64,000 nt of DNA from the sequence record MW021758.1, one strand, 5' to 3'. Shown one piece after another: positions 23,205 to 64,000 of the stretch. Made by a program: the position numbers and the translations under genes. Numbering within the stretch: position 1 is the stretch's first letter; every line of letters begins with the position of its first letter. The notes under the pieces are model-generated. The model ran no database searches. It saw nothing but the letters and a program-made list of their open reading frames with translations, and was not told the DNA's origin.

Positions 23205-23215
23205 ACGTTAAATAG

Positions 23216-23242
23216 GTTGGAGTGGGGTTAACCACTCCAACT
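23216..23242 (-). terminator. Rho-independent terminator
   Basis: gttggagtgg...ccactccaac stem. Confidence 0.55.
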
Positions 23243-34768: not shown

Positions 34769-34788
34769 TATTCAAATAAGTAATATAG
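34769..34788 (-). promoter_or_regulatory. phiKZ-type early promoter
   Basis: minus CTATATTAC-N6-GAATA. Confidence 0.75.
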
Positions 34789-34791
34789 CTG

Positions 34792-44269: not shown

Positions 44270-44289
44270 TATTCACACGGGGTATATAG
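44270..44289 (-). promoter_or_regulatory. early-type promoter (variant)
   Basis: minus CTATATACC-N6-GAATA; same spacing as the consensus copies. Confidence 0.5.
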
Positions 44290-44317
44290 ATCTCAAATTA
44301 TTTGGAAATGGCCAAAA

Positions 44318-46213: not shown

Positions 46214-48715
46214 TTACGCTGTAGTTTCAGTTACTGCTTTCCATGCGCCAGATACAACCTTATAAATTGTACCAGTAGATATATCGTAAGTACGTACACC
46301 GTAACCCGATACAACGGTAGGAACAACCCAGTTAGCAGTTGTCCACGCAACGCAATCTTGAGAGATACGCCACGCACCGGTATTGGTTTTGCCGCTATCA
46401 AATACGAAACGGTTGAAGAACGTTTTATCGGCATCCAAGTTAATACCTGTGCCAGAAATCGTTACATCATTCATGTTTGCATTAGACAACCAAACACGAG
46501 CGTTATTACCCAACGTAAACGGAGAAGCAACCGTTGAGTCGATAACTCTAAGATTAACTACACCGTTCAAGGTTTGCATTACTGAACCTTCGCGGATAAT
46601 AACTTGCGTAGCTGCGGTAGCATTAATTGCACCGGTCGACCAGCTAGAGTTAGAAACTAAAATTGTACCGGTAGAACTGGTAGCGATGTTAGTCCCATTC
46701 GCCTCAGAGTCGATGAATTCAAGACTAGCTTTATTGTCCATGATGACGTTCATGTTAATGCGACTAGACTCAAAGCGTACTCCTTCACCCGCACCCGTAA
46801 TAGTAAAGTCTTTAGTCGAAATAAGTGAGCAATCTCGGAAAATGACTTTCGACGTATCTGACTTAACGGCGTCGTTTATTTTACAGTGTTCGAACGTATG
46901 GCGCATCCGGTTAAGGATGGTGCCGAAGTTATCGAACGTGATATTCAGTAAACCGTTGAACGTACAGTTACTAAACATCGCAGGTGTCCCAACATTGGTC
47001 ACGCCGCCAACGCGAAGATTACTCAGACCTATCCAAGTGGCGCTGGACATCAACGTTAAATCTCCGTTGATCGTCCCTGACAAAATAGGGGAGCTAGGAT
47101 CCACAAGTATTGCGTTGTTACAAACCAGCGCGGTAGTCGCAGTCCTGGCGTTGGCCAGTGTACGGAATTCGTTACAGGTAACAGATGCGATAGTACCAGC
47201 GCCACTTGGACCTGGATCGCCTGAGATAACTGCAACGTTCGCGCCATCCCGGCCAGAAGCGATGTTGTCGCAACTACAAGTGACCGAAGAACCAATGGTC
47301 AATACTGGTTTAACAGTAGATGCTTTGTCGAAAGTAGCGAAACTGACATCACCTAAGTGCCCGCCAATTGAAGAGAAGTAGCACGAAGTGTACCCGTAAC
47401 CATTTCGTGATTCAATCCCGATAGGATTACTCGGAGTTGCCGTAGTGGACAAGATTGCCTCATCGTGAATACGGACAACGTTGGTTTTACTACCAGCAAT
47501 CAACCACGACTTCTCACGGCAGTTATGCGCCATTACTGCCAAGAATGTATTGGCGTTAGATTCATCGCGACTAGACGTACTGTCAGCTTTCCATGCACCA
47601 ACTTCTAATGCAAAGGCGCTTTGGTTCCCAGACCACATTACTCGAATGTCACCCATTACGTTATCGTAAGAGTCAGCGAAATGGATAGCGCGGCCATTGA
47701 AGTTAGTTGCCATCATGAAGTTAAAACGAGAACCCGATGCAATCATCAAGATACCGTTAAGAACAACATTAGGGTTATATCCGTCCATGTTGAACAGATT
47801 CAACTTATCGATGACAAGGTTACCATACGTTGTACCGAAGAACTTACCGTCCGTACCCCACTTACAATTAAGTGCAGTGATGCAGTATGGAGTAGTTCCG
47901 CCCATTGGCACTGTTCCGGTGGCAGCAAACGTATTACCCCGAACCAGGATGTTAAACTGACCGTTCAGATATTTAAGTCCGGTGATATCCCATGTTTTGG
48001 TGATGAAATAACCCCAACGTGGATAACCGTCGTTTCCTGGGTCGTTCTGGAACGTAGCACTGGAAACTAACGGACAGCCTTTGTCACCGGCTCGTTTAGT
48101 CGCAGCCTGCAGTTTATCCGTGACGTCGTAATAAACTTCTTTCCCGGCTTCACGAGAAGAGATTTTAATCCCGTAGTCTAAGAGGTTAACTTCGTTAGCG
48201 GATCGTTCCCAATACCAGGATTCATTAACGGAAATAAGGTGACCGCCATCGTCAACTACAGCCCCTTTCTTGGCGATGAACCAACCGCCGCCTGTAGTTA
48301 CAGTTTCGTCGTAACTAATAACGTAGACCGGCTCTCCCTCTAACGTAGGGGTACGATTACGTAATGCAGCTATTGTCTTAACGGGGATTCTTCCCTTAGC
48401 TGTTAAATGAAAAACCGCATTACCTTCACCATCAATAACCTGACTCGCTCCGGATGGGAGACGTACGTATTCTGCTACGGAGTATTTGTTATCGCTGGTG
48501 TAAACAAGGAAAGTATTACCCACTTCAGTGTCTTTAATGCCGTCAGCCAAAGTTGAGTAAGCATTGTCGTAGTTAGCCCAGCTTCTGAAATCAGATAGAG
48601 TAAAGCGTTCTGTTTCAATTGCGGTGTCTGAGCTACTGACAACAGGTAATAAACTGGACTCTTTGAGTTTTGCACCTTTAGGCAACTCGCTGATTTTAGT
48701 TTGATTGTTGTTCAT
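46214..48715 (-). CDS. tailspike/putative depolymerase with KISELP anchor
   Basis: anchor + head domain (IAALR..GGGWF..DDGG..YWER) + beta-helix; start set at MNNNQ. Confidence 0.8.
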   Translation of the reverse strand: MNNNQTKISELPKGAKLKESSLLPVVSSSDTAIETERFTLSDFRSWANYDNAYSTLADGIKDTEVGNTFLVYTSDNKYSVAEYVRLPSGASQVIDGEGNAVFHLTAKGRIPVKTIAALRNRTPTLEGEPVYVISYDETVTTGGGWFIAKKGAVVDDGGHLISVNESWYWERSANEVNLLDYGIKISSREAGKEVYYDVTDKLQAATKRAGDKGCPLVSSATFQNDPGNDGYPRWGYFITKTWDITGLKYLNGQFNILVRGNTFAATGTVPMGGTTPYCITALNCKWGTDGKFFGTTYGNLVIDKLNLFNMDGYNPNVVLNGILMIASGSRFNFMMATNFNGRAIHFADSYDNVMGDIRVMWSGNQSAFALEVGAWKADSTSSRDESNANTFLAVMAHNCREKSWLIAGSKTNVVRIHDEAILSTTATPSNPIGIESRNGYGYTSCYFSSIGGHLGDVSFATFDKASTVKPVLTIGSSVTCSCDNIASGRDGANVAVISGDPGPSGAGTIASVTCNEFRTLANARTATTALVCNNAILVDPSSPILSGTINGDLTLMSSATWIGLSNLRVGGVTNVGTPAMFSNCTFNGLLNITFDNFGTILNRMRHTFEHCKINDAVKSDTSKVIFRDCSLISTKDFTITGAGEGVRFESSRINMNVIMDNKASLEFIDSEANGTNIATSSTGTILVSNSSWSTGAINATAATQVIIREGSVMQTLNGVVNLRVIDSTVASPFTLGNNARVWLSNANMNDVTISGTGINLDADKTFFNRFVFDSGKTNTGAWRISQDCVAWTTANWVVPTVVSGYGVRTYDISTGTIYKVVSGAWKAVTETTA

Positions 48716-48745
48716 TATACTGGACCTTTTGATTACGCTCGAAAT

Positions 48746-48756
48746 CTCATAGAAAC
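48746..48756 (-). promoter_or_regulatory. late promoter (TATG)
   Basis: GTTTCTATGAG. Confidence 0.5.
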
Positions 48757-48766
48757 ACGACATAAA

Positions 48767-48794
48767 CCCCTTGGCAGCGTTAGTACTGCCAAAG
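48767..48794 (-). terminator. terminator
   Basis: ttggcag/ctgccaa stem. Confidence 0.55.
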
Positions 48795-48803
48795 GTGTCT
48801 ATA

Positions 48804-50993
48804 TTAGCCTTTAGTTACTACAGTGGCAGGATCGGACACGTAACGCCAGTTAGTCCCATCGGAATAGATCAGTTGGTCTTTAGGCGTTTTCGCTGTATCC
48901 GTACAGGTAACAATCGCACGCTTAGCCAAAGATGCCCCTGGTAAGTTAGCGAACGTATATTCTTTCGCCACCACGCCGTTAGCTAAGGTACCAACGAATG
49001 CAAACGGAACCCATTTACCGGCGGCGTCTTTAACCCAAGAGATAGGAGTGCCGTCAGGTGCGTTGGCAACCACGTTCTTGTTAACCCAGATAGAACCGTT
49101 TGGACGAGTGCCGTTAGGCGCTTGTTCCGCAGGGGCGTTATTTGAGTAAACCTGGTTCATCACTGCGCCAGATGGACGGAAGTCAATACCCCATTTGGTA
49201 TCAACGCTCAACGTACCATCAATAACTGTACCGATTACTGCGCCGCCACCGCCAGAGGCGTTGAAGGAGAAGTTACCTTTACAGTGTCCGCCGGTAACAC
49301 GAACGTTCTTCACGTAGTTAGTGAAGTTATCGAAGATACAGTTGTTGAAGTTGATATCCGGGAAAGAGCCATCGTTGTTCATGACGACGTCTTTCATCAT
49401 GGTGTTGGAAATCAGTCCAGTATAAGACGGGTAAGACCAGGTCAGGTTACCAAGACGGCAGTTGTCGATCCATACCCGAGAAGACGGGCCAAAGTAGCAG
49501 TCGGTCAACCAGCTATTGGTGATAGTCATGGCAAACTCACGGTTGGCAGAGGCTAAACAAATACCGCCCCCTCGCGTTGTGTTCGTGATCATGACCACAC
49601 CGTAACCACCGGCGTAAACGAAACGTTCGGTTTCAGAAGACTGCATCTGATCCAGCATGACTTCGGACGAACTGGAGCCATCTACTTGGATAAACACACG
49701 ACCCGCTTTCTCAGGACTGGTGTCCATGACAAAGTTAGGATCGTAGAGTTTAAACTTACTCATCGGGCCGTTACGCTGCTCGCAGTGAATCTTGGAGATC
49801 CACAGGCCAATACCACCACGATAGTAGACAGTAGGGGAACAGTTGTTAGCTTCCCACTGACCGCCTTGGAAACGCAGCATGTTAGATGCATCGCCTGACT
49901 TACTGGAGATGATGTGGATCGGTGCGAATTGCGTCTTGCTCAAGTTGACCAGATCAGCGTAAACGCCGTAGTCCCCTGAGGTACGACCACAGATTTGAAC
50001 TTCCAGGAAGTTGAAGTAACCATCCTGAACTTGGTCGAGGAGTAGGCCAGCGCCTTTGAAGTTCTCGATCTTAAGGCTATCAATCTCAGGGTAACCTACG
50101 TTACGCATGTAGAGGCCGTGTAGGACTTTACCGCCACCCAAGATAGAGAATCCCTTCAGAACTACACCTGAGTAAGTGAAGTCAGTAGGATTGTCTACAG
50201 TAATGCTCAGAACTGCAGTGGTATCGTCATTAAAGTCACCACCCATCCATTGCAAAATGGCACGACCAGTATGGGCACCATCTGCGTACAAAGCAAACCC
50301 TTTGTTAGCTTTGATTACGATTGGCGTACGGATACCAAAGTATTGACTCGGTACCTTGATCGGTTGTAAAGAACGAGAGTATTGGATGTTCTGGATGAAC
50401 GGACCGTTATCCGCTACCGAGTTATCGCAACCACCATCCCACAGAGTCAACGCACGCAGATCCTGACGATACCATACGGTATTCTCATCAACACGAATCG
50501 TGGTGTAACCACCGTCGTCGGGTACGGTCGTATTAACCGCAGATACAAAGCGGCCGCCGCCATTCATTTTACCGGTGTAATACTCGGTGACCTCAACAAT
50601 TTCGTTAGGGTTCTTTGGCTTAGTGGTACGCAGGGTAGCCATGTTAGGAATGACACGATAAGATGCCATACCTTTTGGAGTCAGGTGGACTACAGGAGTT
50701 CCCGCTTCATCCAGAACCTGGCCAGCACCGCTGGCGCCACGAAGGTACTCAGCTACCGCAGTTTTGTCTGGCCCAGTGAATACGAAGAACACCTCGCCTT
50801 GTACCGTATCAGGAATAGCTTCGGCTAAGGTATTGTACGCGTTCTCGTAGTTCAGTCCCTTACGAAGCTGCGCTACGGTAAACTTCTCAGTTATTCCACC
50901 TGCTGTCTTAGCCGTTGCCAATGGCAGTAGGCTGCTTTCCCTTACTTTAGAACCACCAGGTAGTTCCGTAATCTTAGCGCTGTAATCGCTCAT
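48804..50993 (-). CDS. tailspike/putative depolymerase with KITELP anchor
   Basis: anchor + head + beta-helix; C-terminal IYSDGTNWRYV motif. Confidence 0.8.
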   Translation of the reverse strand: MSDYSAKITELPGGSKVRESSLLPLATAKTAGGITEKFTVAQLRKGLNYENAYNTLAEAIPDTVQGEVFFVFTGPDKTAVAEYLRGASGAGQVLDEAGTPVVHLTPKGMASYRVIPNMATLRTTKPKNPNEIVEVTEYYTGKMNGGGRFVSAVNTTVPDDGGYTTIRVDENTVWYRQDLRALTLWDGGCDNSVADNGPFIQNIQYSRSLQPIKVPSQYFGIRTPIVIKANKGFALYADGAHTGRAILQWMGGDFNDDTTAVLSITVDNPTDFTYSGVVLKGFSILGGGKVLHGLYMRNVGYPEIDSLKIENFKGAGLLLDQVQDGYFNFLEVQICGRTSGDYGVYADLVNLSKTQFAPIHIISSKSGDASNMLRFQGGQWEANNCSPTVYYRGGIGLWISKIHCEQRNGPMSKFKLYDPNFVMDTSPEKAGRVFIQVDGSSSSEVMLDQMQSSETERFVYAGGYGVVMITNTTRGGGICLASANREFAMTITNSWLTDCYFGPSSRVWIDNCRLGNLTWSYPSYTGLISNTMMKDVVMNNDGSFPDINFNNCIFDNFTNYVKNVRVTGGHCKGNFSFNASGGGGAVIGTVIDGTLSVDTKWGIDFRPSGAVMNQVYSNNAPAEQAPNGTRPNGSIWVNKNVVANAPDGTPISWVKDAAGKWVPFAFVGTLANGVVAKEYTFANLPGASLAKRAIVTCTDTAKTPKDQLIYSDGTNWRYVSDPATVVTKG

Positions 50994-51005
50994 TTTAATA
51001 CCTTA

Positions 51006-53201
51006 TTAAACAGGGTTACCGTTGCCATCAACCCAAACAGCTGGGTTAGCAGATTTGAGATAAATTGGTTTACCTAATGTGGTGTCGAAGAAGTAATAGC
51101 CAATGGCAGTTACCGCTGGTCGTACGCTACCTGCTGAACTGAACTTAGGGACAGGTTCAATTTGAGATCTGATCTCTAACCAGTCAACACCTAATACGTG
51201 GTTGGTACCTTCGGCATTAGAGGCAGTGATGCGTATCCAGCCCAGGATAGTGTAGGTGCCCTGGGTTGCCTGGGTACCGATACCGGGGTTAGTCAACATC
51301 GCTTTATCGCCGCGAATCCATCCACCGCCTGCGGTAGGGAGATTATCCGTGTACATAGTGCGACGGACATTGGTGATGAACGTGTTGATGTTACGAGATG
51401 GACCATCGATACGACAACCTTCTTCAACTAGTGCAAAACCGGTTAACCAACGATACCCTTCTAACGAAGCGTTAAGGATTTGAGTACCGTTAGTGATTAA
51501 CAACTGACCGGTAGTACTGATACCTGTAATGCCGCGGTTCTGTTGACCAGTAGCATCGAAGTAACAAGCATCTACAGTCAACGACGCATTGCTATCGGTA
51601 ATGATAGCTACTGCTGCACGTTGCTGTTTGTCCAAGCCGTAAGAGTAGATCTTACTGTTACTGATGACCGTGTCGTTACCCGTACGAATAGCGTCGCGGT
51701 CGTAGTTATTCATGGTAACCGAATCCAAGATGACTCGTGCATACGGAGACACGCGTTGGAAGTAGTTGAAACAACCGTTAGCTGGTGCAGTCAACCCGTT
51801 CAGGTTATTACCGTTACCCGTGAACTTACCGTTACGAATAACTAACTGGCCACTAAAGTTCTGAGCGTAGATAGGGTTAACGCAAATGTCCATGTCGCAA
51901 CCTGTGAAGCGAATGGAATCGGCGCTACCTGCATAACGCTCACCTCTCAGGAAGATACCCTTACTGTACCCGAATGCAAAGATACGTTGTACTTCAGCAA
52001 AGTCAACACGACCAAAGTGGAACGCCTCACCATTCTCATGAATCCACTGTTTCAGAGATTGTGCGTAGTCCTGATCGGAGTTCAGGTACATGTTGTAGTT
52101 CCAATGGATATCGGAAATACGAGGGATGTCCAGAACACGGTCAAGTGAGATACCACGATAGATAGGAGCGCCGTTAATATCTTTCATCGTGATATACGAT
52201 GCGGAACCTTCGTCGTTACCGCCGATCTTAAATCCGTAGTAAGCGTTACCTACGTTTATTCCCGTGAAAGAAGAATAAAATCCAGCACCGACAAAAATAG
52301 GTCCGTAACGCACAATCGGCTTAGCATTGATGTCTTTTGTTTGTTTCGGGTAGTTGAAGACAAGTCCGGAGATTCGGTTTTTACTTTTGACAAGGAACTG
52401 TCCGGTTGTTTCGATTTCGTGAGTGATTTCAAAGTAAGCTCTCCCACCGTTAGCCACAGTAAGATCAACACCTACTGGAATTTCAATCCCTGCTACCGCT
52501 AGACTCATTTGAGCCCCATCACGGAATACAACAGGACGTTTCAAGTTAACCGCCTGAGCAATGGCTTGTTTCAACGTAGTGGATACGTCATTACCTGAAC
52601 CATTCACGTAACCGAACCACTCTGGGTTAATGCCTTCGTCGACATTAATACGGCGCCAGTGGAAACCGTCCCCTGCCGCAACAATACCGTTGTCGTCAGC
52701 TCCCGTAGACAGATTGCCTTGGAAACGACCACCGCCGTAAGTGGAGCCCTCGTTCCAACCCAGAAGTTCTACAATAGCACCTTCGAAAGGAGGTTTGATT
52801 TCACGCAGTCGTGCAAAGGAACTTACGTGACCGATCATGGTAAGTCCTAACTCACCGCGAATGAAGTCCAGCGCTTTAGCGGTTTGTCCTTTAAAAGGAT
52901 TACCCTGCGCATCTTGGACGATCTCTGCTGCACCATTACTGTTAAGGTACGCGTAGACTTCTAACTGGGTTTCATCGACGTATACGTGGAAGATCTGTCC
53001 TGGGATAGTGTTGGCTAAACCTTCCTGTACGGTTAGGAAAGCGTTGGCGTAATTGAGCTGATCACGTAGGGCACTTAACTTTATTTTACGTGTTTGTTTA
53101 TCGCCCATGTCATCGTTAGTGAACGGGATGATATCGTTGTCGTTAATACGATTAGGATCGTCTAACTGACTAATCTTAATACCGCTGAAATTATCGGCCA
53201 T
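51006..53201 (-). CDS. tailspike/putative depolymerase with KISQL anchor
   Basis: anchor + head + beta-helix; C-terminal FFDTTLGKPIY...WVDGNG. Confidence 0.8.
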   Translation of the reverse strand: MADNFSGIKISQLDDPNRINDNDIIPFTNDDMGDKQTRKIKLSALRDQLNYANAFLTVQEGLANTIPGQIFHVYVDETQLEVYAYLNSNGAAEIVQDAQGNPFKGQTAKALDFIRGELGLTMIGHVSSFARLREIKPPFEGAIVELLGWNEGSTYGGGRFQGNLSTGADDNGIVAAGDGFHWRRINVDEGINPEWFGYVNGSGNDVSTTLKQAIAQAVNLKRPVVFRDGAQMSLAVAGIEIPVGVDLTVANGGRAYFEITHEIETTGQFLVKSKNRISGLVFNYPKQTKDINAKPIVRYGPIFVGAGFYSSFTGINVGNAYYGFKIGGNDEGSASYITMKDINGAPIYRGISLDRVLDIPRISDIHWNYNMYLNSDQDYAQSLKQWIHENGEAFHFGRVDFAEVQRIFAFGYSKGIFLRGERYAGSADSIRFTGCDMDICVNPIYAQNFSGQLVIRNGKFTGNGNNLNGLTAPANGCFNYFQRVSPYARVILDSVTMNNYDRDAIRTGNDTVISNSKIYSYGLDKQQRAAVAIITDSNASLTVDACYFDATGQQNRGITGISTTGQLLITNGTQILNASLEGYRWLTGFALVEEGCRIDGPSRNINTFITNVRRTMYTDNLPTAGGGWIRGDKAMLTNPGIGTQATQGTYTILGWIRITASNAEGTNHVLGVDWLEIRSQIEPVPKFSSAGSVRPAVTAIGYYFFDTTLGKPIYLKSANPAVWVDGNGNPV

Positions 53202-53231: not shown

Positions 53232-53270
53232 TTCATAGGAACAAAATAGGAGGAGGGTTTCCCCTCCTCC
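53232..53270 (-). promoter_or_regulatory. terminator + late promoter module (repeat copy B1)
   Basis: ttcataggaac-aaaata-g-gaggagggtttcccctcctc. Confidence 0.7.
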
Positions 53271-53273: not shown

Positions 53274-56200
53274 CTATGCTGTAAATTTAACCACAGGTAC
53301 CCAAGTGGATACAGAAGTAGTGGGATCTAGCTTAGAGCAGTAGTAAACTAAGCCATCTCCATCTGCTGTCGGGCCCAATCTTTCACACATCGTACCTACC
53401 GGAATCCCGTTTGGAGTAACCCAACCCGTTACTGTCCCGTAACATACGCATTGCCCAGTGAAACGGGGGCCGTCGTTTTTGATATTACTAATTGCTACGT
53501 TACCAGAGAATCTACATGATGAGAACCATAAATTCTTAGAGTTGATTGTAGCGTTTACTCCGTCGATTATTGTATTTCCCGTAATCAAGCAGTTGTTGAA
53601 CTTAGCTCTTTCGGGAGTTGCTGAACTATTTAACGAAATTGAAGCGATGGTACAATCGTTGAAATAGTTGTATCCGGTACACAACCCATTAACTCCGCCG
53701 TTGAAAGTACAATTGGTGAAATTAGTAGTAGCAGTTGAGTTTGGTGTCGCCACGTACGGTAGGGTAAACGTAACAGAATCGAAATTACCGTAACTGGCCC
53801 CTAGGTTACGGATACGACCAAAGGATACCTTATGCGCAGACTCCCAGATAAATGCAGTGTCTTTAACCAAGATATTTCCAATGTTTATCCTGGCGCTAGG
53901 TTCTGCATGATAAACGTCGGTAGATAGTGCGCCGATGTAACCATACATATTCGATCCGCCAAACGTACTAGTTATCGATTTAGCTGCGCTTGATGAAGAG
54001 GTGGCTATACTGGATGATAAATCAAGTACAAGACGAGTATGACTACCTACGTCGAGGGCATCTTTATCACCGTAGTACGTTTTACCGTTACTTCTACGAT
54101 AGTCGTTAACAGTTAAGTCACCTACAGTCCCTGCAACCAAATAGAACTGATGGTTAAGGTAAGTTAATCCGGACTTCGTACTTCCGGTATAACCGTCATC
54201 GGTTACCAACGTAGCGGTTGCTTCAATGTGGACACGCTCGATGTTGTGCTTAGAACCGTTAATCGAGACGCCCTTATGATACGCATCATGACAGAGAATG
54301 TTACTAACTGTTATTGAGTTAGTCTCGTCTCCATTGCCTCTCCAGTACTGAGAGTAGGTCGTCTCGTTACCGCAGCGTTCGGTCACCAACCCAGCGAATA
54401 CCGAGTCGTACACTGGACCAAACTGGTAACCAGCCCCATCGAATGCGCGCGCGGAAATCCTGCCGACATTACCACCAGTGAATTTAAAGAAAATACCGCT
54501 CATTGGCGATGCGCGTTTAGAAACGTCCTCTACGTGAATATCGGCTATATTAGGCCACCCACTGATGTCCTTATAATCGGTATCTGGATTACCCCAACAT
54601 AACACGTAACTGCCGCTAGTTTTATCGAACTTGTCAGATGCAACGTAAATACGAATACTATCTCCGACTATGTTCATAATCCCGGTCATTACTAACATTT
54701 TAGTCGTGTAGTAACCCTCGTTGATCTTTGAACATGGGAAGAATATAGAGTACCCTAAGCGTTTAGCGGCTGCGATCGCGTTAGCTAAGGCTACCGTACT
54801 ATCAGTACCCTTCAAAGTTATCCTCCCGTAATCGCCGATAGCCCCAAAGTGTTCTACGTTAACACGTTTGTCCTGAACTTGACGAAGCCAGCTGTAACCG
54901 TTACCGGTAATCGCCATACCACCATCATCAGGAGCTGTAATCAACGTCCCGATGAAATTACCGCCCCCTATTCCTTTACCTGCCACGTAGCTCTTAAGTT
55001 CTATCTGATCCCCTTCTTTAGCAGGACCTACCATTCGAAGTTCTTCGACAAAATCCACTGAACGATTAGGGTAACTTACGCCGGCATATACGGCTGCATC
55101 AAACGGGCGGAACGTAGGGCCTTGGTAAGAGTTCATTACGAGCTTACCGGTGATCTGAGGACGAGCCACGCTCGGGCCGAACATATCGACGTCGCCCCAG
55201 TTCAAGGTCATGGTTCCGTCACCTTTAATGACGAATGGAGCCGCGACACCTTGTTTGTACTGGAAGGAAAGACGTTTGATTACCGGACGAGCATTATTCT
55301 CAACAACCAATGCAGTACCGAAGTTACGACGGAACTCCAGTTCATCGATGACGGAATCGCTCTCGATGAGCATTACCGGACTTGTACTTGCTGAAGTCGT
55401 AGCCGCCAGAATCATTTTACCGATACGGGCGTTCTTACGCAGAGAAACCGTATAACCGCCCTGAAGGTTGTTCAAGGATTGGATATAGAACGATTTCAGA
55501 TACAGACCATCGGTGTTGATGTAAACGTCGTTGTTAATCGTAGAGGCGCCGAGGAAGTCGATTGCGTCCACGATAACTTTAGTAATCTGGGAGTTAGGAC
55601 CATCTGTTGCCGAGAACAGAGTAGATCCTGCCAGGTTGGTTTTGCTCATGATCCGAATCTTACCGATCGAACCATTCGCACAGTTACCGTTGATCCCTAC
55701 ACCGACGTGTACTTTGTTAAAGTGCAGGTTACCGATGGTGAAGTTCTTAGCGCCAATCCACAAAGCAGCCGCTTGGTTAGCGTACTGGAAGTTATCTTCG
55801 TAGATAGAACCCAGGTTCATGTCACCGGAAACTGTTACACCGTCGCCCTGGATGTTCAGACCAGCGCAACCGAAGTATTGGCAACTGATGTTGGAGATCT
55901 GGATGTTTTGAGAACCAGCCCCATCTGCGCCACATGACACAATGCAACCTGGGAGAGCCGTAGCGCCGTCTTCGTTGTTTTTGTCAATACAGCCTGCGTA
56001 GACGATATCGACGTTGTGAGCTTTACCTGAACCACCTTTAAGGATGATCGCGTCACCAGAACACCAACCGACCGAGCTGTTAGTGATTTCGTTATACCCT
56101 GGATCGTAGCAAGAGAACATTGCTGTACGAAGGTCGTCGCCGAAGCAGTTGTTCACGTAGGCTTCACCAAAACCACGCAGGGCGTTAGACCAACCGTAGA

Positions 56201-57128
56201 AGTTACAGTTCTCAACTACACCGTAACTAATGCACAAAGCATCGCACTGGTTAACATCGTTCCACTTAGAGTTCTTAGTGGCAGGGCCCTGGAGATTTAA
56301 GTTGAAGAAGCTACGGAACTTCGTGTAACGTTGAGTAACACCATTGGCGTCAATCTCGTTAATCAAACCACGGGATTTATCGGAATACTTGATCCAAGCT
56401 CCGTTGCCGTCGATGAACTGTTGCCATTTGATTGACTTCAGGACAAGAGTACGGTTTGCGATATAAGTAGCACTACCATCGAACTGGACATCTAAGCCGG
56501 AGTTCAACGCTCCTTCAATAGCAGCGGAGTCGTCTTTATCTGGAGTACCGTAAGCACCGAACATTTCCGGAGTGACGAAGTTAGTGTTACGTACCCAGTA
56601 GTAGTTACTCCCGTCACCAGCTACCATACCGCCATCGTCGGCGCGTTTACCGTAATAACCAATAAACTCACCACCACCTTTATTAAGGCCTTTATAATAG
56701 CTACTGAGATAAATGCTAACACCCTCTTTTAATGGGCGGGTGTTACGGAGTTCATCAAAGCTGCCTACGGTGGCCCCGACAGCCAGACTGCCTACAATAC
56801 CCATACGCGTTGGGTAATAGATGACTCCTTCTTTGGGATCTTGGACTGGGGTAGCGGCACCGCCAATGTTCTGGTATTCGTTGGCGAATACTCTGGTGCC
56901 ATCAGAGTAGACGAAGAACGTATCGCCTAGCTTAGTGGCATCGACACCGTCCTTAATAGTTTCGTAGGCGTTTGACAAATCGAAGTAACTCCGCATTTCG
57001 CGGAAGTTAACTTTACCCGTCATCTTAGCGCCTTGACTACGCCCTACCGCAGGGAGAACAGAGTTGGAATCGAAGTGGTCTAACTTCGGCAACTCGGTAA
57101 TGCGCAATTGTAAATCGTTATCTGACAT
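53274..57128 (-). CDS. tandem double tailspike (anchor + two head/beta-helix modules)
   Basis: head motif occurs twice (SFDELR..KGGGEF..DDGG and VEELR..GGGNF..DDGG); start set at MSDND. Confidence 0.8.
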   Translation of the reverse strand: MSDNDLQLRITELPKLDHFDSNSVLPAVGRSQGAKMTGKVNFREMRSYFDLSNAYETIKDGVDATKLGDTFFVYSDGTRVFANEYQNIGGAATPVQDPKEGVIYYPTRMGIVGSLAVGATVGSFDELRNTRPLKEGVSIYLSSYYKGLNKGGGEFIGYYGKRADDGGMVAGDGSNYYWVRNTNFVTPEMFGAYGTPDKDDSAAIEGALNSGLDVQFDGSATYIANRTLVLKSIKWQQFIDGNGAWIKYSDKSRGLINEIDANGVTQRYTKFRSFFNLNLQGPATKNSKWNDVNQCDALCISYGVVENCNFYGWSNALRGFGEAYVNNCFGDDLRTAMFSCYDPGYNEITNSSVGWCSGDAIILKGGSGKAHNVDIVYAGCIDKNNEDGATALPGCIVSCGADGAGSQNIQISNISCQYFGCAGLNIQGDGVTVSGDMNLGSIYEDNFQYANQAAALWIGAKNFTIGNLHFNKVHVGVGINGNCANGSIGKIRIMSKTNLAGSTLFSATDGPNSQITKVIVDAIDFLGASTINNDVYINTDGLYLKSFYIQSLNNLQGGYTVSLRKNARIGKMILAATTSASTSPVMLIESDSVIDELEFRRNFGTALVVENNARPVIKRLSFQYKQGVAAPFVIKGDGTMTLNWGDVDMFGPSVARPQITGKLVMNSYQGPTFRPFDAAVYAGVSYPNRSVDFVEELRMVGPAKEGDQIELKSYVAGKGIGGGNFIGTLITAPDDGGMAITGNGYSWLRQVQDKRVNVEHFGAIGDYGRITLKGTDSTVALANAIAAAKRLGYSIFFPCSKINEGYYTTKMLVMTGIMNIVGDSIRIYVASDKFDKTSGSYVLCWGNPDTDYKDISGWPNIADIHVEDVSKRASPMSGIFFKFTGGNVGRISARAFDGAGYQFGPVYDSVFAGLVTERCGNETTYSQYWRGNGDETNSITVSNILCHDAYHKGVSINGSKHNIERVHIEATATLVTDDGYTGSTKSGLTYLNHQFYLVAGTVGDLTVNDYRRSNGKTYYGDKDALDVGSHTRLVLDLSSSIATSSSSAAKSITSTFGGSNMYGYIGALSTDVYHAEPSARINIGNILVKDTAFIWESAHKVSFGRIRNLGASYGNFDSVTFTLPYVATPNSTATTNFTNCTFNGGVNGLCTGYNYFNDCTIASISLNSSATPERAKFNNCLITGNTIIDGVNATINSKNLWFSSCRFSGNVAISNIKNDGPRFTGQCVCYGTVTGWVTPNGIPVGTMCERLGPTADGDGLVYYCSKLDPTTSVSTWVPVVKFTA

Positions 57129-57158
57129 GGACGTGAGCCTCATGGTATTGTGTAAATA

Positions 57159-57200
57159 TTCATAGGAACCCAAAATAAAAGAGGAGGGTTTCCCCTCCTC
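57159..57200 (-). promoter_or_regulatory. terminator + late promoter module (repeat copy B2)
   Basis: ttcataggaac-ccaaaataaaa-gaggagggtttcccctcctc; 20 nt identical to 53250..53269. Confidence 0.7.
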
Positions 57201-57205
57201 TGGTT

Positions 57206-59218
57206 TTAGGAAACGATGGAGACTGCGCGCCAGGTACCAGGGCTACCTGCTGTAACGCATCGCCAGTGAGTAACTCCGCCTGCAGTGGGTGCAGTATTCC
57301 AACACAAATCACCTACTCTGAATGATCCAGTAGTCGGGGCACTTGTACCAACTACCTGTTTGAACGTAGGTGTTACCCAACGGACTCCGTTACTTGTTTG
57401 AGTAAACGTACCAAGGACTTTGTTATTACCCCACATCCCACCACCGGAACCATAGTTAGCATCCCCAGTTATATAACATCCATCCATGAACACATTAGTC
57501 GTATCGTCGGCAATAGTTACATTGGCACCGAAATAGCAACTTCTGATAGTCATCCGAAGATCAGCTCCGGCATGGGTCGTTGTGAAGTCACCGACGAAAG
57601 TACATTTATCAAACCAGATATCTGAGTTAGGGTACGCCAACGTAACTGGTTGAGAAAAGTTACAGTACTCGAACTTAGTGAAACGTTTACGAGCCAGACC
57701 TGGGATAGAGTAGAAACTTATCCCGTGGAATTCGGCGCGGCTAGTCACGTCGTTTAGCATCGTGTACACAATACCTGGGGAGCACCGTACATCGCGAAGA
57801 TATAGCTCCCCGTAGTTGTGTTGGATCCCCTGGTATTCGGCAATACCACCGCCATTGATTTTAGTTACACCCTGTTGCATCTTAAGGAAGTAAGGTGTAG
57901 GTGCACCTTTGATGTCCCAGTTAGCGTTAAACTCAACATGGCAGTTATTGATGTAGTTCTCGATACCCCAGTTAAGATCCATCACTGGGCAAACGTGGTT
58001 GTCTTCAAATTGACAGTCGTTAAAACGAAGGTAGTTACAGAAGTCATTGGATATAGTACTGACTGCAACGATAGGCGACTCTACCGTTTTAGTCATGTCG
58101 AAGGTATCGACGTTAGAGGTACGATCTCCCGACGTACGACCGCAATCCCATACGTTAAAGAAGTTGAAATCGCTATCCTGACTTTTATCGAGATAAAGAC
58201 CAGCTCCGTTGAAACGCTCTACGTTAACGTAGCTGAACAGAGACTGATATTGGTATTGAAGGTATATACCGCGGCAAGTACTCATGTTACCTAACAGCTG
58301 AATATTACTTATTTCAATCCCAGCGAAACCTGCCTCCATGGCATTGGTAGTGGGGTTACGGCCTGGGAAGTGAAGAGCTCCGTAGGTTTCGTAACCTGGC
58401 CCGATCTGAACGGAGATTGTAGTTGAGTCTTTGACGCCACAACCGCGAAGTTTAATCCCACAGTTAGTCTGGAATACGATCGGGGTACGAATTACAATTG
58501 GGTTAGCGTTACTTCCCTGAGGAAGCATCAGTATCTTTTTACGGGATGCATCGGCCGCTTTCTTCAGTGCAATGGCGTTATCTGCCTGAGAATAATGCAC
58601 ACCCCACCACTCGGCATGGTTGGTAGATGTATCAACGATAACGCGTTTCCAACGGGCTCCTCCCGGAGTAACTGCCACTGTACCGGAGTTATCTGCTGCA
58701 TTTTTATCCGATACGTCATGGAAGAATTCTCCGCCGCCGTAGTTAGCGCCTTCTCGATATCCGCTGAGTAAAACTCGCTGGCCAGGGAAGGTAGGTTCTG
58801 TTGCTCGTAACTCATCGAATGATTTGATCTGACCAATCAATCCGAACCCGACACTAGAACGTATTTGTTCAAGATGTTTAACAAGTTCTTTGGTTGGTTC
58901 CCTGAGCGGATTCCCTGACATATCGAGAACCGGGGATGCAATCCCACCCATGTTCACGTAACGGTAAACGAACTCTTTCGAGTCATCAACGAATACGTAA
59001 AACTGTTGATCTTTAACGGTTGCTGCAATAGCTGCGTTCAAGTCAGAGAATGCGTTACCGTAATCCATCAGCTTACGCAATTCGCTGACAGTGATACGTT
59101 GAGTCTCTAACTTATCTGCTCCCGTTATACGAGATGCCGCGAAGATATCGCTATCGTTAATCCCAGTCCCGGTAGGTTCGGGTAACTGAGATATTTTAAC
59201 TGGTGATTTATCGGCCAT
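57206..59218 (-). CDS. tailspike/putative depolymerase with KISQLP anchor
   Basis: anchor + head + beta-helix; C-terminal GD..WN..P..GG...WRCVTAG.PGTW. Confidence 0.8.
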   Translation of the reverse strand: MADKSPVKISQLPEPTGTGINDSDIFAASRITGADKLETQRITVSELRKLMDYGNAFSDLNAAIAATVKDQQFYVFVDDSKEFVYRYVNMGGIASPVLDMSGNPLREPTKELVKHLEQIRSSVGFGLIGQIKSFDELRATEPTFPGQRVLLSGYREGANYGGGEFFHDVSDKNAADNSGTVAVTPGGARWKRVIVDTSTNHAEWWGVHYSQADNAIALKKAADASRKKILMLPQGSNANPIVIRTPIVFQTNCGIKLRGCGVKDSTTISVQIGPGYETYGALHFPGRNPTTNAMEAGFAGIEISNIQLLGNMSTCRGIYLQYQYQSLFSYVNVERFNGAGLYLDKSQDSDFNFFNVWDCGRTSGDRTSNVDTFDMTKTVESPIVAVSTISNDFCNYLRFNDCQFEDNHVCPVMDLNWGIENYINNCHVEFNANWDIKGAPTPYFLKMQQGVTKINGGGIAEYQGIQHNYGELYLRDVRCSPGIVYTMLNDVTSRAEFHGISFYSIPGLARKRFTKFEYCNFSQPVTLAYPNSDIWFDKCTFVGDFTTTHAGADLRMTIRSCYFGANVTIADDTTNVFMDGCYITGDANYGSGGGMWGNNKVLGTFTQTSNGVRWVTPTFKQVVGTSAPTTGSFRVGDLCWNTAPTAGGVTHWRCVTAGSPGTWRAVSIVS

Positions 59219-59258
59219 TGTATACTTATCCTGATTGTTTTAGGAAACTGTCATATGA

Positions 59259-59293
59259 ACAAACATAGGCCAGGGAAACCCCTGGCCGTATGA
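59259..59293. repeat. 35-nt direct repeat copy A1 (terminator hairpin)
   Basis: acaaacataggccagggaaacccctggccgtatga, identical to 61466..61500; TATG element at 59251..59260. Confidence 0.9.
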
Positions 59294-61426
59294 CTAGATG
59301 ATATTGTTCTGGGTAATAGTAGACCCTTGACCAACCTGTACTTTACCCGTAGTACCCGCTCCAAGACGACTATTGGCGATTAATACGTTTACGTTATTAG
59401 CATCGGATGTAATATCGTAAAGTGGTTTATTCGCATTAGCCGAAGACGATACTCCGCTGAGGATACTGTTACGTACACCCAGTAACCGGATCGGATAAAA
59501 TGCAGATGGAGTTTTAACTCCCGCATCATTGATGTTGAACTTGATATTACTTTCAACAACGCCGTTCAATGTCATACCGTGTTCAGGGACGTTCACCAAC
59601 TTAACATCTAAGTTAGAGTAACGACAGCCAACTGCTTCCAGCGCGTCCTGTGCAGGCGACTCAACGTAGAGGTCTAAGTCCATGTTGTTACAGTTAGAGA
59701 AAGTACAGCCGCGGCGTTGAGCATTGATCAAACGGATACTGCCCGTAATCCGATTACTGTCGGTAATAACCACCCCGTTGAGTGTCTTGGTCGTGGAGAC
59801 ATTATCCGCCACCAAATCAACTTTACCCGAGGAAGACGTAATCGTAATAGCGGAGCCAGCGGCATCTGTAACACGACCGGTCATTTGGAAGTTGGTGCAG
59901 TTGGTAATCTCAATCGTGGTTACGTTACCGGTGCTCTGGGTAAGGATAACGTTATCCAACAGAACCGGTTGGTAAAGATCACGAATACCTATCACGGTGC
60001 GAAGCGTATTTACAAATACGTTTCCGATAGCCTTGATACCTTTAATCAAATCACCTGCTGCGATGAAGTCTGGGTTAACCGTACCGAAACCAAAACCGCC
60101 ATAACAGTTAATGAAATAGTTGTTGAGGTAAGTACCGTTACTAGCTTCGTCAGCGTTCTTGGTATCTTCAGCGTTATTCGCAATACCCGCGCCTTTCTTA
60201 CCATTACCGATATTGATGAAGCGACAGCTTTTGATCAAGGTATCACGACCTTTGTTGACGATACCGTCTCCGTAGAAGGTTCCGTCTCGGTGAGCTACCT
60301 GGGCGCTATTGACAACATCACATTCAACAAACTCATTACGGAGACAACCGCCGCGTACAGTAACCGAGTCTTCACCTGCGTTAATGAAAGTACAGCGGAT
60401 AAACTGGTTATCGGTGGAGTTATTCTGCAGCCCCAAGTTATCGAACTTACCGTTCTTGAATGTCACGTTAGTAAAGACGCAATTCGTCCAGTTGTCTAAC
60501 GTGTTCTCGCCAAACTCAAAGCCTAATGCACCCGTAGTATCGACATAGTTGACGTCAATAGTCAGGTCTTTAAAGATAGCTCCAGTTACGGCAGTACTTC
60601 CGTTTGCGCGGTCGTTATCAACGCCAGCGGCTGTAGTCGGAGAAGAGATAAACGGAATTCGGTTACCTGTCCCTCTGAATACGATAGAAGCACCGTTACC
60701 AATCCAGCCGGCTTTAGAATAATGTTTTACCGGGGATGAGTAATAATAGGTTTTACCTGGGGAGAGGGTAATAGGGCCTACTTGTGCTTTCTGAGATGCA
60801 CGCATTGCTTCAGTATCGTCTACTTGACCGCCACCGAAATCTTCGAGCGTAAAGGCAGTCTTGTTCCGCTTCCAATAAAAGCCATCACCTGAGGCAGTAG
60901 TACCGCCATCATCGTTAGCTGTCCCTGCGTACCCCACAAATTCCCCGGATCCCAAAGAGCTACCAGAGAAATACCCAGCCAGGATAACACGTTGGCCTGT
61001 GTAGGTAGGTTTGATAGAACGCAGCGCGGAGAAATTGTCAACCTTACCAATGATATCGTAACCGGACGTCTCAGAGATAGCAGTTACGTTCAGCATGGAA
61101 AGATAAGTAGGGAAGCGGCGTTGTTTGCCATCGGAACCAATGACGGGCGATGCCTGGTTACGAACTCTCATGTACTGAAGAACGGAGAACTTAGCCGCGG
61201 TGTCGTAAACAAAGAACATCTCGTTATCGTCTACGGAAGCTAAACCTTCGGCGATAGTGTTAGCTGCGTTACTGAAGTAGACACCCTCACGAATATCGTA
61301 GAGAGAAGCTACGCTAGTTTGATCCAACTTAGTGTCGTTGGTATTGATGATAAACTGATCGTTCTCCATAACTTCCTTTTTAGGTAAGTCGGAGATCTTA
61401 GTAAATTTCATTGGGGAGACTGGCAT
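59294..61426 (-). CDS. tailspike/putative depolymerase with KISDLP anchor
   Basis: anchor + head + pectate-lyase-like beta-helix; start set at MPVSP. Confidence 0.8.
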   Translation of the reverse strand: MPVSPMKFTKISDLPKKEVMENDQFIINTNDTKLDQTSVASLYDIREGVYFSNAANTIAEGLASVDDNEMFFVYDTAAKFSVLQYMRVRNQASPVIGSDGKQRRFPTYLSMLNVTAISETSGYDIIGKVDNFSALRSIKPTYTGQRVILAGYFSGSSLGSGEFVGYAGTANDDGGTTASGDGFYWKRNKTAFTLEDFGGGQVDDTEAMRASQKAQVGPITLSPGKTYYYSSPVKHYSKAGWIGNGASIVFRGTGNRIPFISSPTTAAGVDNDRANGSTAVTGAIFKDLTIDVNYVDTTGALGFEFGENTLDNWTNCVFTNVTFKNGKFDNLGLQNNSTDNQFIRCTFINAGEDSVTVRGGCLRNEFVECDVVNSAQVAHRDGTFYGDGIVNKGRDTLIKSCRFINIGNGKKGAGIANNAEDTKNADEASNGTYLNNYFINCYGGFGFGTVNPDFIAAGDLIKGIKAIGNVFVNTLRTVIGIRDLYQPVLLDNVILTQSTGNVTTIEITNCTNFQMTGRVTDAAGSAITITSSSGKVDLVADNVSTTKTLNGVVITDSNRITGSIRLINAQRRGCTFSNCNNMDLDLYVESPAQDALEAVGCRYSNLDVKLVNVPEHGMTLNGVVESNIKFNINDAGVKTPSAFYPIRLLGVRNSILSGVSSSANANKPLYDITSDANNVNVLIANSRLGAGTTGKVQVGQGSTITQNNII

Positions 61427-61453
61427 GTCATGGCCCTTTTCCAATTGAGTTAT

Positions 61454-61464
61454 TTCATAGGAAC
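61454..61464 (-). promoter_or_regulatory. late promoter (TATG)
   Basis: GTTCCTATGAA. Confidence 0.65.
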
Positions 61465-61465
61465 G

Positions 61466-61500
61466 ACAAACATAGGCCAGGGAAACCCCTGGCCGTATGA
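61466..61500. repeat. 35-nt direct repeat copy A2 (terminator hairpin)
   Basis: identical to 59259..59293. Confidence 0.9.
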
Positions 61501-61503
61501 TCG

Positions 61504-63924
61504 TTAAATGTTAGGCATCTCAAAACATTCTAGTGTAACAACTGCGTTAGTCAACGTCACTGTAGCAGCAGTCGTGTTAACAAATCGAATCGTTACTTCC
61601 CCATCCTTGGTGCAATCGCACTGAATCATTACACCATTACGATTGACCGAACACCAAACTTTACCGACGGCCCAGGTACCTTTAACTTTTGAATCTTGTG
61701 CCACGATCACCGCAGTCCCGTTGGCCGGTACCGATTGAGTAAACGTATTAGACTTGACGTAATACGGAGTGAACTCAACAGCGGCCTTTTTACCAGTTTC
61801 ATCGATAACTACGTAAGTACTCGCTCCTCCCTCTGGGGCAACTAAGGAAATGCGATCGCCCTTTTTGTAGTTAACCAGGGAAGATAAAGTCGAGTCGTAC
61901 ATGTAGTCGTTGTTACCAAACTCAGCCCTACTCAACCCTAAGGACCTGATAGAGTCAGCACCGATGGTAAAGTTACATACCGAAGGGGCCTTGGTAATAT
62001 AAATATTATCTCGGAACATGGAATGACCGTAAGGTAGCCCGGAAGTGACGAACGCCAGAACACCGTACGTACTCGCTGTATCGATGTTGTTGTTAGTGAA
62101 GATCATATTCTTAGTTGCTGACATCCGAATATGACCCATATTGGTATCCTTCACTAAGTTGTTACTGAAGGTCACCGATTCAGATAATTTTATCCATACC
62201 GAGTTAGCGCCTGGGGAAGTAAACGGAGATCCGATAAATTGGTTAGCGTTAATTAACGCGTTCCCGGAGGCCATGATAGCTACTCTACCATTGACTACTG
62301 TATTCCCAGTTACAGTACCGGTACCGATGTCTAACGATGGGAAATCGCCATTAGTCTTGTAGCCGGCATTCTCAATTACGTTACCTGTTACACTAACATA
62401 ATCTACCGTAATGCCACGGTTTGAACGGAACCCGATACCAACCTCGCCAATATCCTTTAGGATGTTGCCACTTACTGAGAAACGTAATACTGGGTTAAGT
62501 GCAGGGTTATTGAATGGCGTGGTATCAATAACTAAACCGAATCGCGTGACGCCAGTAATGATGTTACCTTGGATAACCGCGCTGGTTAAGTTATTGAACG
62601 CTATACCATAGCTCAAATTACGACAGGTATTACGAGAAACGACTAATCCGTCCATCGTGGTACTAGATCCGCCGGCACCGTTAATATTTTCGTCATTAAG
62701 AGTTATACCACCGCCGCGTTGACCGACAGCGGCAACTGGATCGATCAGACCATCATAAACGAAGTTATCTACTATCTGACCATCGTGGCACTCGATGTTA
62801 CCCGTCTTCATTAAAATCCCATCTCCGTGATGGTGGAAGACGTGGTTACCTCTGACAATAAAGTTACGGCTGCTACGGATGGCAATACCTTCTTCGCCTA
62901 ATTCGTGCGTTTTGTTGTTTTCAATCAGGACTCGGTCGGAGTTACTTACCGAGATAGCGTCGGTTTGTAACGAGATATCGTTGTCCCGAATAGTCAAGTC
63001 TTTTACCCGAGTCAACTGGATAGCAGTTGCGCCCTTACTCCACATAGTAGCCGGTTTATCGACAGCCCTGCTGATAATCAACCCTTGAATAAGAAGTGAC
63101 TCTAAGTCTGATCCGGTGAATAATATCAGAGTAAGGTCTTGGGAGTCAATAAAGATTTCCCCTGGACCGATGATGGATGTAAAGCTTGTCAACTCAAAAG
63201 ACTTATTTACCCTGTAGTTTCTAGTCAACTTAACAATGATGTTATTATCACTTTTTCCGTTGAGCTTACAAAACGCCAAAGCATTGTCTATCGAGTCATT
63301 ATCTACATTTACGCCATCACCGACTGCGCCGAACATCTCTAAGTTTATTTCATTACCTAACAGACGTTTCCATGAGTAATTACCATTACTGACAGATGCG
63401 ACCGTACCACCGTCATCGACTGAGTAGGTTAGCGAGGATATAAATGCACCCCCGCCTAAATGGCTACCGGAATGAAATCCGTTGAGGTAAACTACCTGAC
63501 CCTCTTTAGTAGGTACTAAATTACGCAATGAATCGTAGGAGTCTACTCGTCCAACAACTCCGAAACCAAACGGGCCGCCTAGGTCACCTATAGTCTTAAG
63601 TGCGATACCCGTGCCCTCTATAATCTGTTTCCCGTCTTCACCAACAACAGGACTGGCGACGTCGTTTATTTTCAAATACCGAGCAACTGTTAACTTATCT
63701 GCATCGTTATAGACGTAGAAAGAGTCGCCGTTATTAGTAATATCTAATCCTTCTTCGATACTGTTGAATGCGTCATTGAACAATATTGCAGAACGAATAT
63801 TGGTAATATCAGCCTGTCTGGTAATCGGCAAACCTCGCGTGGTTGTATTATTCAGCGGGATAGCATCACTTTCCCGTACAACAGTAGCCTTACCGAGCTC
63901 AGATATTTTAACCTGATCAACCAT
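61504..63924 (-). CDS. tailspike/putative depolymerase with KISEL anchor
   Basis: anchor + head + right-handed beta-helix (I.GN...N repeats). Confidence 0.8.
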   Translation of the reverse strand: MVDQVKISELGKATVVRESDAIPLNNTTTRGLPITRQADITNIRSAILFNDAFNSIEEGLDITNNGDSFYVYNDADKLTVARYLKINDVASPVVGEDGKQIIEGTGIALKTIGDLGGPFGFGVVGRVDSYDSLRNLVPTKEGQVVYLNGFHSGSHLGGGAFISSLTYSVDDGGTVASVSNGNYSWKRLLGNEINLEMFGAVGDGVNVDNDSIDNALAFCKLNGKSDNNIIVKLTRNYRVNKSFELTSFTSIIGPGEIFIDSQDLTLILFTGSDLESLLIQGLIISRAVDKPATMWSKGATAIQLTRVKDLTIRDNDISLQTDAISVSNSDRVLIENNKTHELGEEGIAIRSSRNFIVRGNHVFHHHGDGILMKTGNIECHDGQIVDNFVYDGLIDPVAAVGQRGGGITLNDENINGAGGSSTTMDGLVVSRNTCRNLSYGIAFNNLTSAVIQGNIITGVTRFGLVIDTTPFNNPALNPVLRFSVSGNILKDIGEVGIGFRSNRGITVDYVSVTGNVIENAGYKTNGDFPSLDIGTGTVTGNTVVNGRVAIMASGNALINANQFIGSPFTSPGANSVWIKLSESVTFSNNLVKDTNMGHIRMSATKNMIFTNNNIDTASTYGVLAFVTSGLPYGHSMFRDNIYITKAPSVCNFTIGADSIRSLGLSRAEFGNNDYMYDSTLSSLVNYKKGDRISLVAPEGGASTYVVIDETGKKAAVEFTPYYVKSNTFTQSVPANGTAVIVAQDSKVKGTWAVGKVWCSVNRNGVMIQCDCTKDGEVTIRFVNTTAATVTLTNAVVTLECFEMPNI

Positions 63925-63953
63925 TTTATTTACCTTACAAAGTCTGTTTAGAT

Positions 63954-63965
63954 TTCATAGGAAAC
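63954..63965 (-). promoter_or_regulatory. late promoter (TATG)
   Basis: GTTTCCTATGAA. Confidence 0.65.
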
Positions 63966-63971
63966 GATATA

Positions 63972-63995
63972 AGGAGAGGGCCGAAGCCCTCTCCT
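63972..63995 (-). terminator. terminator with cUUCGg loop
   Basis: aggagagggc-cgaa-gccctctcct. Confidence 0.75.
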
Positions 63996-64000
63996 CTATT

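Follow-up and report, generated by a model that had tools for sequence, protein, structure and literature searches.

Why should a perfect 35-nt direct repeat bracket exactly one gene in a row of tailspike genes? The question arises in the Serratia jumbo phage vB_SmaM_Yaphecito (MW021758.1, 275.5 kb; genus Moabitevirus, phiKZ-like), where a stretch of 64,000 nucleotides, hereafter the window (its positions 57000-64000 match the end of the Yaphecito genome at 100% identity), contains two identical copies of a 35-mer on either side of the gene for a 710-aa tailspike/depolymerase-like protein (gene B, 59294..61426, minus strand). A first reading of this DNA, made without knowledge of its source (the sequence-only reading), took gene B for an exchangeable receptor-binding cassette that recombination between the copies would excise or duplicate as one complete promoter-gene-terminator unit, and offered simple reuse of a terminator as the alternative. 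Our comparison of nine genomes supports a different and probable origin, namely that the 35-mer is a terminator hairpin copied locally onto the adjacent junction in one species-level lineage. The 35-mer is thus an ordinary regulatory element with a small evolutionary story.

An exact search of the window bore out the two identical copies, at 59259-59293 (copy 1) and 61466-61500 (copy 2), and a search of the window allowing up to three mismatches returned no further one. No match to the 35-mer arose in any of 100 shuffled sequences, and no other exact repeat in the 64 kb, of whatever kind, is as long, the next being a 24-nt palindrome and a 20-nt direct repeat. Counted over complete genomes, the 35-mer occupies two places in Yaphecito and in the related phages Moabite and Haymo, and one place in the other relatives. 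Chance or convergence is ruled out as its origin by the shuffled sequences (0/100) and by an identity that covers the loop and the flanks as well, and an assembly artefact is ruled out by a two-copy state common to three independently assembled genomes. A terminator common throughout the genome, an outcome that the sequence-only reading had named as counting against its own proposal, is likewise ruled out, because there are at most two places per complete genome and the other hairpin families in the window are just 70-94% alike.

All long open reading frames (ORFs) in the array part of the window lie on the minus strand, and on that coding strand both copies have the same setting. Copy 1 starts 0 nt past the TAG stop codon of gene B, which it touches as had been described. 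Copy 2 starts 3 nt past the TAA stop codon of the upstream gene (gene A) and lies 39 nt upstream of the gene B ATG and 2 nt upstream of the promoter-like motif TTCCTATGAA (61463-61454). The sequence-only reading had placed this second copy just upstream of a TATG promoter of gene B; the position holds, the promoter role is putative, and we add the correction that the genes are those of the minus strand. Since the 35-mer fills exactly the stretch that separates stop codon and promoter motif, the repeated unit would be the terminator and nothing else. The tailspikes on either side are indeed diverged: the products of genes A, B and C (the gene downstream of copy 1) are alike in their N-terminal ~180-240 aa only, at 27-39% identity, and their bodies are unrelated.

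Read on the coding strand, the 35-mer consists of a GC-rich 12-bp stem that has one bulge and is capped by a loop of 4 nt, with a U-rich tail behind it. The stem core (59287-59268) has eight GC-rich pairs, or 12 including its extension, and the predicted fold has a minimum free energy of -20.2 kcal/mol, accounts for 92% of the ensemble and has a z-score of -4.3. A consensus scan, in which the tail had to contain at least five T in eight positions, listed both copies as terminator-like, with the tail TATGTTTGT, while an Rfam search of the 35-mer region gave no family matches. With its GC-rich stem-loop and U-rich tract, its sense position past a stop codon and the covariation described below, the 35-mer shows the sequence-level features of an intrinsic terminator and is predicted to act as one. 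On the evidence of exact match, terminator-like score, fold and conservation, copy 1 is the candidate terminator hairpin of gene B at the junction of genes B and C (B|C; other junctions are named likewise). Copy 2, which reproduces the B|C terminator exactly and has the same score and fold, is the candidate terminator hairpin that follows gene A.

The two hairpins belong to a layout that recurs along the array. At six junctions, neck|A, A|B, B|C, C|D, D|E and G|H, the stop codon is followed by a GC-rich hairpin, a U-rich tail, a promoter-like 10-mer, a leader and the next ATG. The 10-mer is TTCCTATGAA, with the variant TTCATATGAC at B|C. There are five exact copies of TTCCTATGAA in the window, all of them on the minus strand, intergenic and inside the array; allowing one variable position (TTCNTATGA) gives six matches, again all on the minus strand, in the array and within the ~10% of the window outside ORFs. 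The G of TATG, at 63956, 61456, 59252, 57161, 53234 and 46168, stands 30-34 nt before the ATG in all six units. For gene B the motif lies at 61454..61463, with this G at 61456, 30 nt before the ATG. For gene C the variant TTCATATGAC lies at 59250..59259 on the minus strand and takes in the last base of copy 1; its G, at 59252, precedes the ATG by 34 nt, and the motif is conserved in the relatives Totoro and L088. For gene A the motif TTCCTATGAA (63954..63963, minus strand) is preceded by a hairpin at 63971-63996 that comes after the upstream neck/tail gene. Late promoters of phiKZ are marked by TATG, with the G as +1, and the non-virion polymerase requires this motif for transcription (Yakunina et al. 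2015, PMC4666361). By analogy with phiKZ, we infer that the array 10-mers are late promoters of the tailspike genes. Subunits of a phiKZ/EL-like virion RNA polymerase and a phiKZ-like prohead protease are annotated in relatives' records, and the polymerase of the array is presumably the phiKZ-type non-virion RNA polymerase.

To whom do these hairpins belong, the gene or the junction? The nine genomes compared were Yaphecito, Moabite, Haymo, Kodama, 2050HW, BUCT660, ParM-25, Totoro and L088, the last being an uncultured Moabitevirus-like relative (a Logan SRR22103703 contig of 99.7 kb) that was reached through a full-length relative of protein A, 56% identical. Nucleotide identity to Moabite in the neck and protease genes is 93-99% for Kodama and 2050HW, 78-87% for Totoro and 73-77% for L088. 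In seven genomes, the flanking genes of which differ by up to ~7%, the B|C junction does not vary at all over the 114 nt that were compared. In Totoro (73-78% nucleotide identity) the stem, tail and promoter motif of the B|C copy are kept and the 4-nt loop is changed to one of 10 nt. In L088 the B|C hairpin lies directly past the slot-B stop codon despite an unrelated slot-B body, its stem having lost the bulge and gained one compensatory C-G to G-C change. This persistence of the B|C hairpin behind an unrelated body places it with the junction, that is the slot, and not with the gene body, and the pattern of changes argues that the predicted B|C hairpin is under structural selection.

The same holds at other junctions. 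Two unrelated C alleles are followed by one and the same C|D hairpin, the hairpins behind the two D alleles are variants with a compensatory A-T to C-G pair, and the orthologous junction hairpins are present in L088 with altered loops. The covariation sample is small, at one compensatory pair per hairpin. Conservation is higher in the junction modules than in the genes on either side of them. A second case of related neighbours was found by the comparison of hairpin families and the terminator scan: the candidate terminator hairpins after gene C (57180..57201, minus strand) and after gene D (53249..53270, minus strand) are near-twins, sharing a 20-nt exact core and 24 of 27 positions, and they bracket gene D as the 35-mer pair brackets gene B.

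The copy at A|B has a much narrower distribution, being found there in Yaphecito, Moabite and Haymo only. In Kodama, 2050HW, BUCT660, ParM-25 and Totoro, an unrelated allele of 754 aa occupies slot A, and the spacer at A|B (Kodama 16428-16468) is 41 nt long, has a weak hairpin (z-score -0.85) and lacks a TATG motif. In these phages gene B and the gene upstream of it are probably transcribed together, to judge from this spacer, and the expression layout would therefore differ between the lineages. Comparison of the Moabite lineage with the Kodama/2050HW lineage by blastn (breakpoints 61426 and 63821, four genomes) delimits a segment without nucleotide homology at 61427..63820 on the minus strand, which comprises the body of gene A and the whole A|B spacer. 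Because homology stops at 61426 and resumes at 63821, copy 2 lies inside this heterologous block. We dropped the idea that the 754-aa A allele is ancestral: slot A of L088, the most distant genome, holds the 806-aa type, and both A types are therefore old. At the A|B junction of L088, what comes behind the 806-aa type is another, unrelated hairpin of 10 bp, and after it the promoter motif and a leader. The A|B leaders of the window and L088 are 72% identical over ~40 nt, as compared with 63-67% for non-orthologous leaders. The A|B spacer of the window thus looks chimeric, with a hairpin half of the B|C kind and a promoter/leader half of the A|B kind.

Taken together, these observations lead us to propose that the tailspike array would be a row of self-contained units, each with a promoter-like motif, a gene and a hairpin directly past the stop codon. 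Each junction has a hairpin of its own, which is kept across the genus even beside replaced bodies. The copy after gene B would be the native terminator of the B|C junction, and the copy after gene A a lineage-specific exact copy that has taken the place of another hairpin, one that stood between the 806-aa A gene's stop codon and the promoter of gene B. The likeliest route would be short-patch ectopic gene conversion between neighbouring junction modules, with the short flanks that they share (5', TCATA; 3', the U-rich tail and promoter motif) as possible guides of a short conversion tract. The alternative of simple terminator reuse comes closest to this proposal in that the repeat covers exactly a terminator; it falls short in that the terminator is not a generic one but a local copy of that of the neighbouring junction.

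Several points weigh against this proposal. The U-tail of the 35-mer is imperfect and interrupted (UAUGUUUGU), and both termination at the 35-mer, predicted from its sequence features, and promoter use at the array motifs, proposed from the phiKZ precedent, are putative. The kinship of the A|B leaders of the window and L088 is suggestive and the link modest. The B|C module is 100% identical where the flanking genes are ~93% identical, and the identity of the two copies is therefore no proof of a very recent event. Finally, no donor of the A allele of the Moabite lineage was found in phage, IMG/VR, metagenome or protein collections, and the second copy could have come with that allele.

Recombination has left clear marks on the array, at other places than the 35-mer. 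Of the 73 mismatches between Yaphecito and Kodama over 16.4 kb, 38 fall in 60989-61426. Piled up in this way in the coding DNA of the 5' part of gene B (60989..61426, minus strand), they place a mosaic crossover of Kodama inside gene B and not in the repeat; the same density of single-nucleotide differences rules out a breakpoint at the gene B ATG. To the left of this crossover Kodama is ~100% Yaphecito-like, and to the right of it at least 14 kb are 2050HW-like; the crossover joins two large blocks, not a small cassette. BUCT660 (coding sequence 5196-8201) has no equivalent of 47850-51822, ~4 kb of the array, and the ends are joined there at an 11-nt microhomology in paralogous coding DNA of genes G and E, with an in-frame chimera and the loss of gene F as the outcome. 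Totoro (10156-13971) has a much shorter array, with a 978-aa gene that combines a C-type N-terminus with an F-like body and with no equivalents of genes D and E. The body of gene C is replaced in Moabite and Haymo, where the heterology ends at the stop codon, and the C-terminal half of gene D is replaced in Moabite, Haymo, 2050HW and ParM-25; the C and D body replacements end at the stop codon or within the hairpin. The modular gain and loss that the sequence-only reading foresaw is real to the extent that bodies have been replaced, fused and lost among relatives, but these events have used coding DNA or the border of stop codon and hairpin, not the 35-mer.

How, then, do other accounts of the repeat fare? 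In one of them, the Moabite lineage acquired the 806-aa A allele from an unsampled relative through homologous recombination, with the hairpin already in the spacer of that allele, and the duplication took place elsewhere or earlier. The block 61427-63820 fits such an import, since the A body and the A|B spacer are heterologous between lineages together and so travel as one piece; mosaicism is pervasive in these genomes, and the 806-aa type is old, as its presence in L088 indicates. Import merely shifts the copying into an unseen genome, however, where a copy of the B|C terminator at A|B would still be needed, and the sole other genome with this A type, L088, has a different hairpin at that place. 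With the collections yielding no donor, we regard import as unlikely. The cassette proposal itself, in which the 35-mer pair is a recombination substrate that excises gene B (as a deletion and a circle of ~2.2 kb) or duplicates it, so that B would be an exchangeable receptor-binding cassette like the genes flanked by the stem-loop cassettes of T4-type phages, draws its strength from geometry: one crossover between the direct repeats would remove one promoter-gene-terminator unit and leave the neighbours intact. Such cassettes do recombine in T4-type phages and form mini-circles (PMC2839356). The array evidently can lose and fuse genes, as in the shortened array of Totoro and in BUCT660, where a mere 11 nt of microhomology sufficed, and an origin of the second copy by ectopic conversion would mean at least one past interaction between the two junctions. 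What the geometry permits is nevertheless not what the relatives display. Alignment of the locus for breakpoints at the repeat, the check suggested along with the proposal, went against it: in nine genomes there was no indel or replacement breakpoint within the 35-mer and no loss or duplication of gene B. Slot B is occupied in 9/9 genomes, no other array member is as stable as gene B, and the sole crossover nearby that can be placed lies ~40-480 nt away, inside gene B.

Wider searches also gave the cassette proposal nothing to build on. Two more contigs with the exact A protein have Moabite-like neighbours, and exact-protein look-ups returned Moabite-like contexts only. Scans of IMG/VR and of metagenomes for the hairpin with a variable loop gave 72 + 4 loci, none of them related to the window except 2050HW itself; a search of IMG/VR for related loci with proteins A and B gave nothing new, and no locus of the junction type was found in IMG/VR or metagenome contigs. 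Confined to one species-level lineage, the repeat cannot be a general mechanism of the array. A 35-bp direct repeat could in principle delete gene B, and yet there is no sign that this has been of evolutionary importance; we think the cassette proposal even less likely than import. Least probable by far, to the point of being scarcely credible, is a dedicated recombinase site (integron attC-like) or the end of a small mobile element. Hairpin repeats bracketing a single gene superficially resemble an integron cassette, but there are two copies only, in one lineage only, with no matches outside Moabitevirus genomes or to known RNA families, no terminal inverted repeats or target duplications beyond the hairpin itself, and no recombinase gene among the annotated neighbours. 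Moreover, the orthologous hairpins tolerate loop replacement and compensatory stem changes, in keeping with a structural terminator and not with a sequence-specific site. Local copying of the B|C terminator onto A|B is thus the account that we favour.

The 35-mer lies among seven consecutive large minus-strand genes, A to G, which extend leftwards from 63924 to 46214. The proteins that they encode resemble one another (27-43% identity) in an N-terminal module of ~180-240 aa and are unrelated in their bodies; the module matches PHROGs for tail proteins, tailspikes and exopolysaccharide (EPS) depolymerases, PF27114 and the N-terminal part of solved depolymerases. From these matches, the predicted function of the array justifies the name tailspike array. 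Gene A (61504..63924) encodes the 806-aa tailspike allele with a beta-helix, polygalacturonase-like body (Pfam Beta_helix, NosD and GH28; phrog_27156, tail spike). The N-terminus of the gene B product carries the anchor module, with matches to tail and EPS-depolymerase PHROGs, to PDB depolymerase chains at aa 74-198 and to PF27114 (Phage_tail_beta), and a Pfam search of its body gave no match. Gene B is present in eight of the genomes, and in L088 only the N-terminal ~190 aa match. Gene C (57206..59218, minus strand) encodes a 670-aa tailspike-like protein, and gene D (53274..57128, minus strand), between the near-twin terminators, a 1284-aa tail fibre/tailspike protein. Genes E (51006-53201), F (48804-50993) and G (46214-48763), all on the minus strand, are ORFs with the shared N-terminal module.

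Some further observations concern the array and its surroundings. L088 keeps the slot order of the array, and the bodies in its slots B and C differ. Over much of the tailspike array there is 97-98% identity between the Serratia phage 2050HW and ParM-25, which was reported on Pectobacterium aroidearum. In the 2050HW record the slot A, F and G genes are each annotated in two pieces and are whole in near-identical phages. Part of a neck-like gene of Yaphecito (record 1-2217) is ~100% identical to Kodama and 2050HW and 87-90% identical to Moabite; judged by these identities, it is another candidate recombination patch adjoining the array. Elsewhere in the window, a 24-nt exact palindrome lies near 42330, and a family of 37-nt direct repeats has four intergenic copies (5054-5090, 23186-23222, 34770-34806 and 44271-44307) that may represent another promoter class.

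Since the comparative evidence lends no support to repeat-driven loss of gene B, the finding is mostly ordinary. Its use in practice lies in a map of the transcription units of seven tailspike genes in a row, annotated with a candidate late promoter 10-mer, slot-specific terminators and 30-34-nt leaders. It also bears on how such an array evolves, with bodies being replaced between a conserved N-terminal anchor and a border formed by stop codon and hairpin. It is tempting to go further and to speculate that junction modules consisting of a slot-specific hairpin and a TATG promoter are recombination anchors of the tailspike arrays of nucleus-forming jumbo phages, forming a PeSL-like system (see below) that makes use of the phage's late promoters, that the 35-mer pair is a fresh trace of recombination between modules, and that gene B is poised for precise loss or circle formation in the Moabite species; we doubt that this larger claim is correct.

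Arrays of several tailspikes with a conserved N-terminal anchor and exchangeable bodies are familiar from Klebsiella jumbo phages with many depolymerases, from the tailspike protein (TSP) clusters of Ackermannviridae and from the tail-gene cassettes of SP6 and K1-5; our literature search for a source on the SP6/K1-5 cassettes gave nothing usable. The Yaphecito array resembles these systems in its seven paralogues, with an N-terminal module of ~200 aa and unrelated bodies that are swapped between close relatives. It differs in that the point of interest here is the non-coding junction modules, which our literature search did not find described for Moabitevirus. The hairpins themselves are similar to the intrinsic terminators of phage late operons in having a GC-rich stem-loop right after the stop codon, a U-rich tail, a stem kept by compensation and a loop free to vary, and differ from them in the interruption of the U-tract here; an exact 35-nt duplication at adjacent junctions is also unusual within this window. 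The candidate promoters share with the late promoters of phiKZ the TATG core upstream of late structural genes, in a group of phages whose records annotate phiKZ/EL-like polymerase subunits. They differ in being a longer exact 10-mer, TTCCTATGAA, that is confined within the window to the tailspike array and that the phage polymerase would be expected to use.

A further comparison is with the promoter-early stem-loops (PeSLs), mobile regulatory cassettes of T4-type phages (Arbiol et al. 2010, PMC2839356; Comeau et al. 2014, PMC4122927). In PeSLs a stem-loop terminator is joined to a promoter; they lie on either side of genes in plastic regions, bring about shuffling and give rise to mini-circles (PMC2839356). 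The junction modules differ from them in several respects. Their motif is of the late TATG type, while the PeSL promoter is sigma-70-like and early; they separate large structural tailspike genes, while PeSL genes are small ORFans; and each junction has its own hairpin, while PeSLs form one dispersed family. In place of many dispersed copies, the 35-mer has at most two per genome, the other junctions carry different hairpins, and there is one further near-twin pair. Nor does any breakpoint between relatives fall in the repeat: the C and D replacements end at the stop codon or hairpin, and the Kodama crossover and the BUCT660 deletion lie in coding DNA. On the other hand, both systems place composite modules of terminator and promoter between the genes of a plastic region, here as a hairpin and a TTCCTATGAA-type motif at six junctions; in both, direct repeats of a module flank single genes, and replaced segments are bounded by modules in the T4-type phages and, in the case of the C and D bodies, in part here. 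Should the repeat promote the loss of gene B, a PeSL-like mechanism would operate in a very different phage group. As matters stand, the junction module is PeSL-like in layout, and we do not file it as a PeSL.

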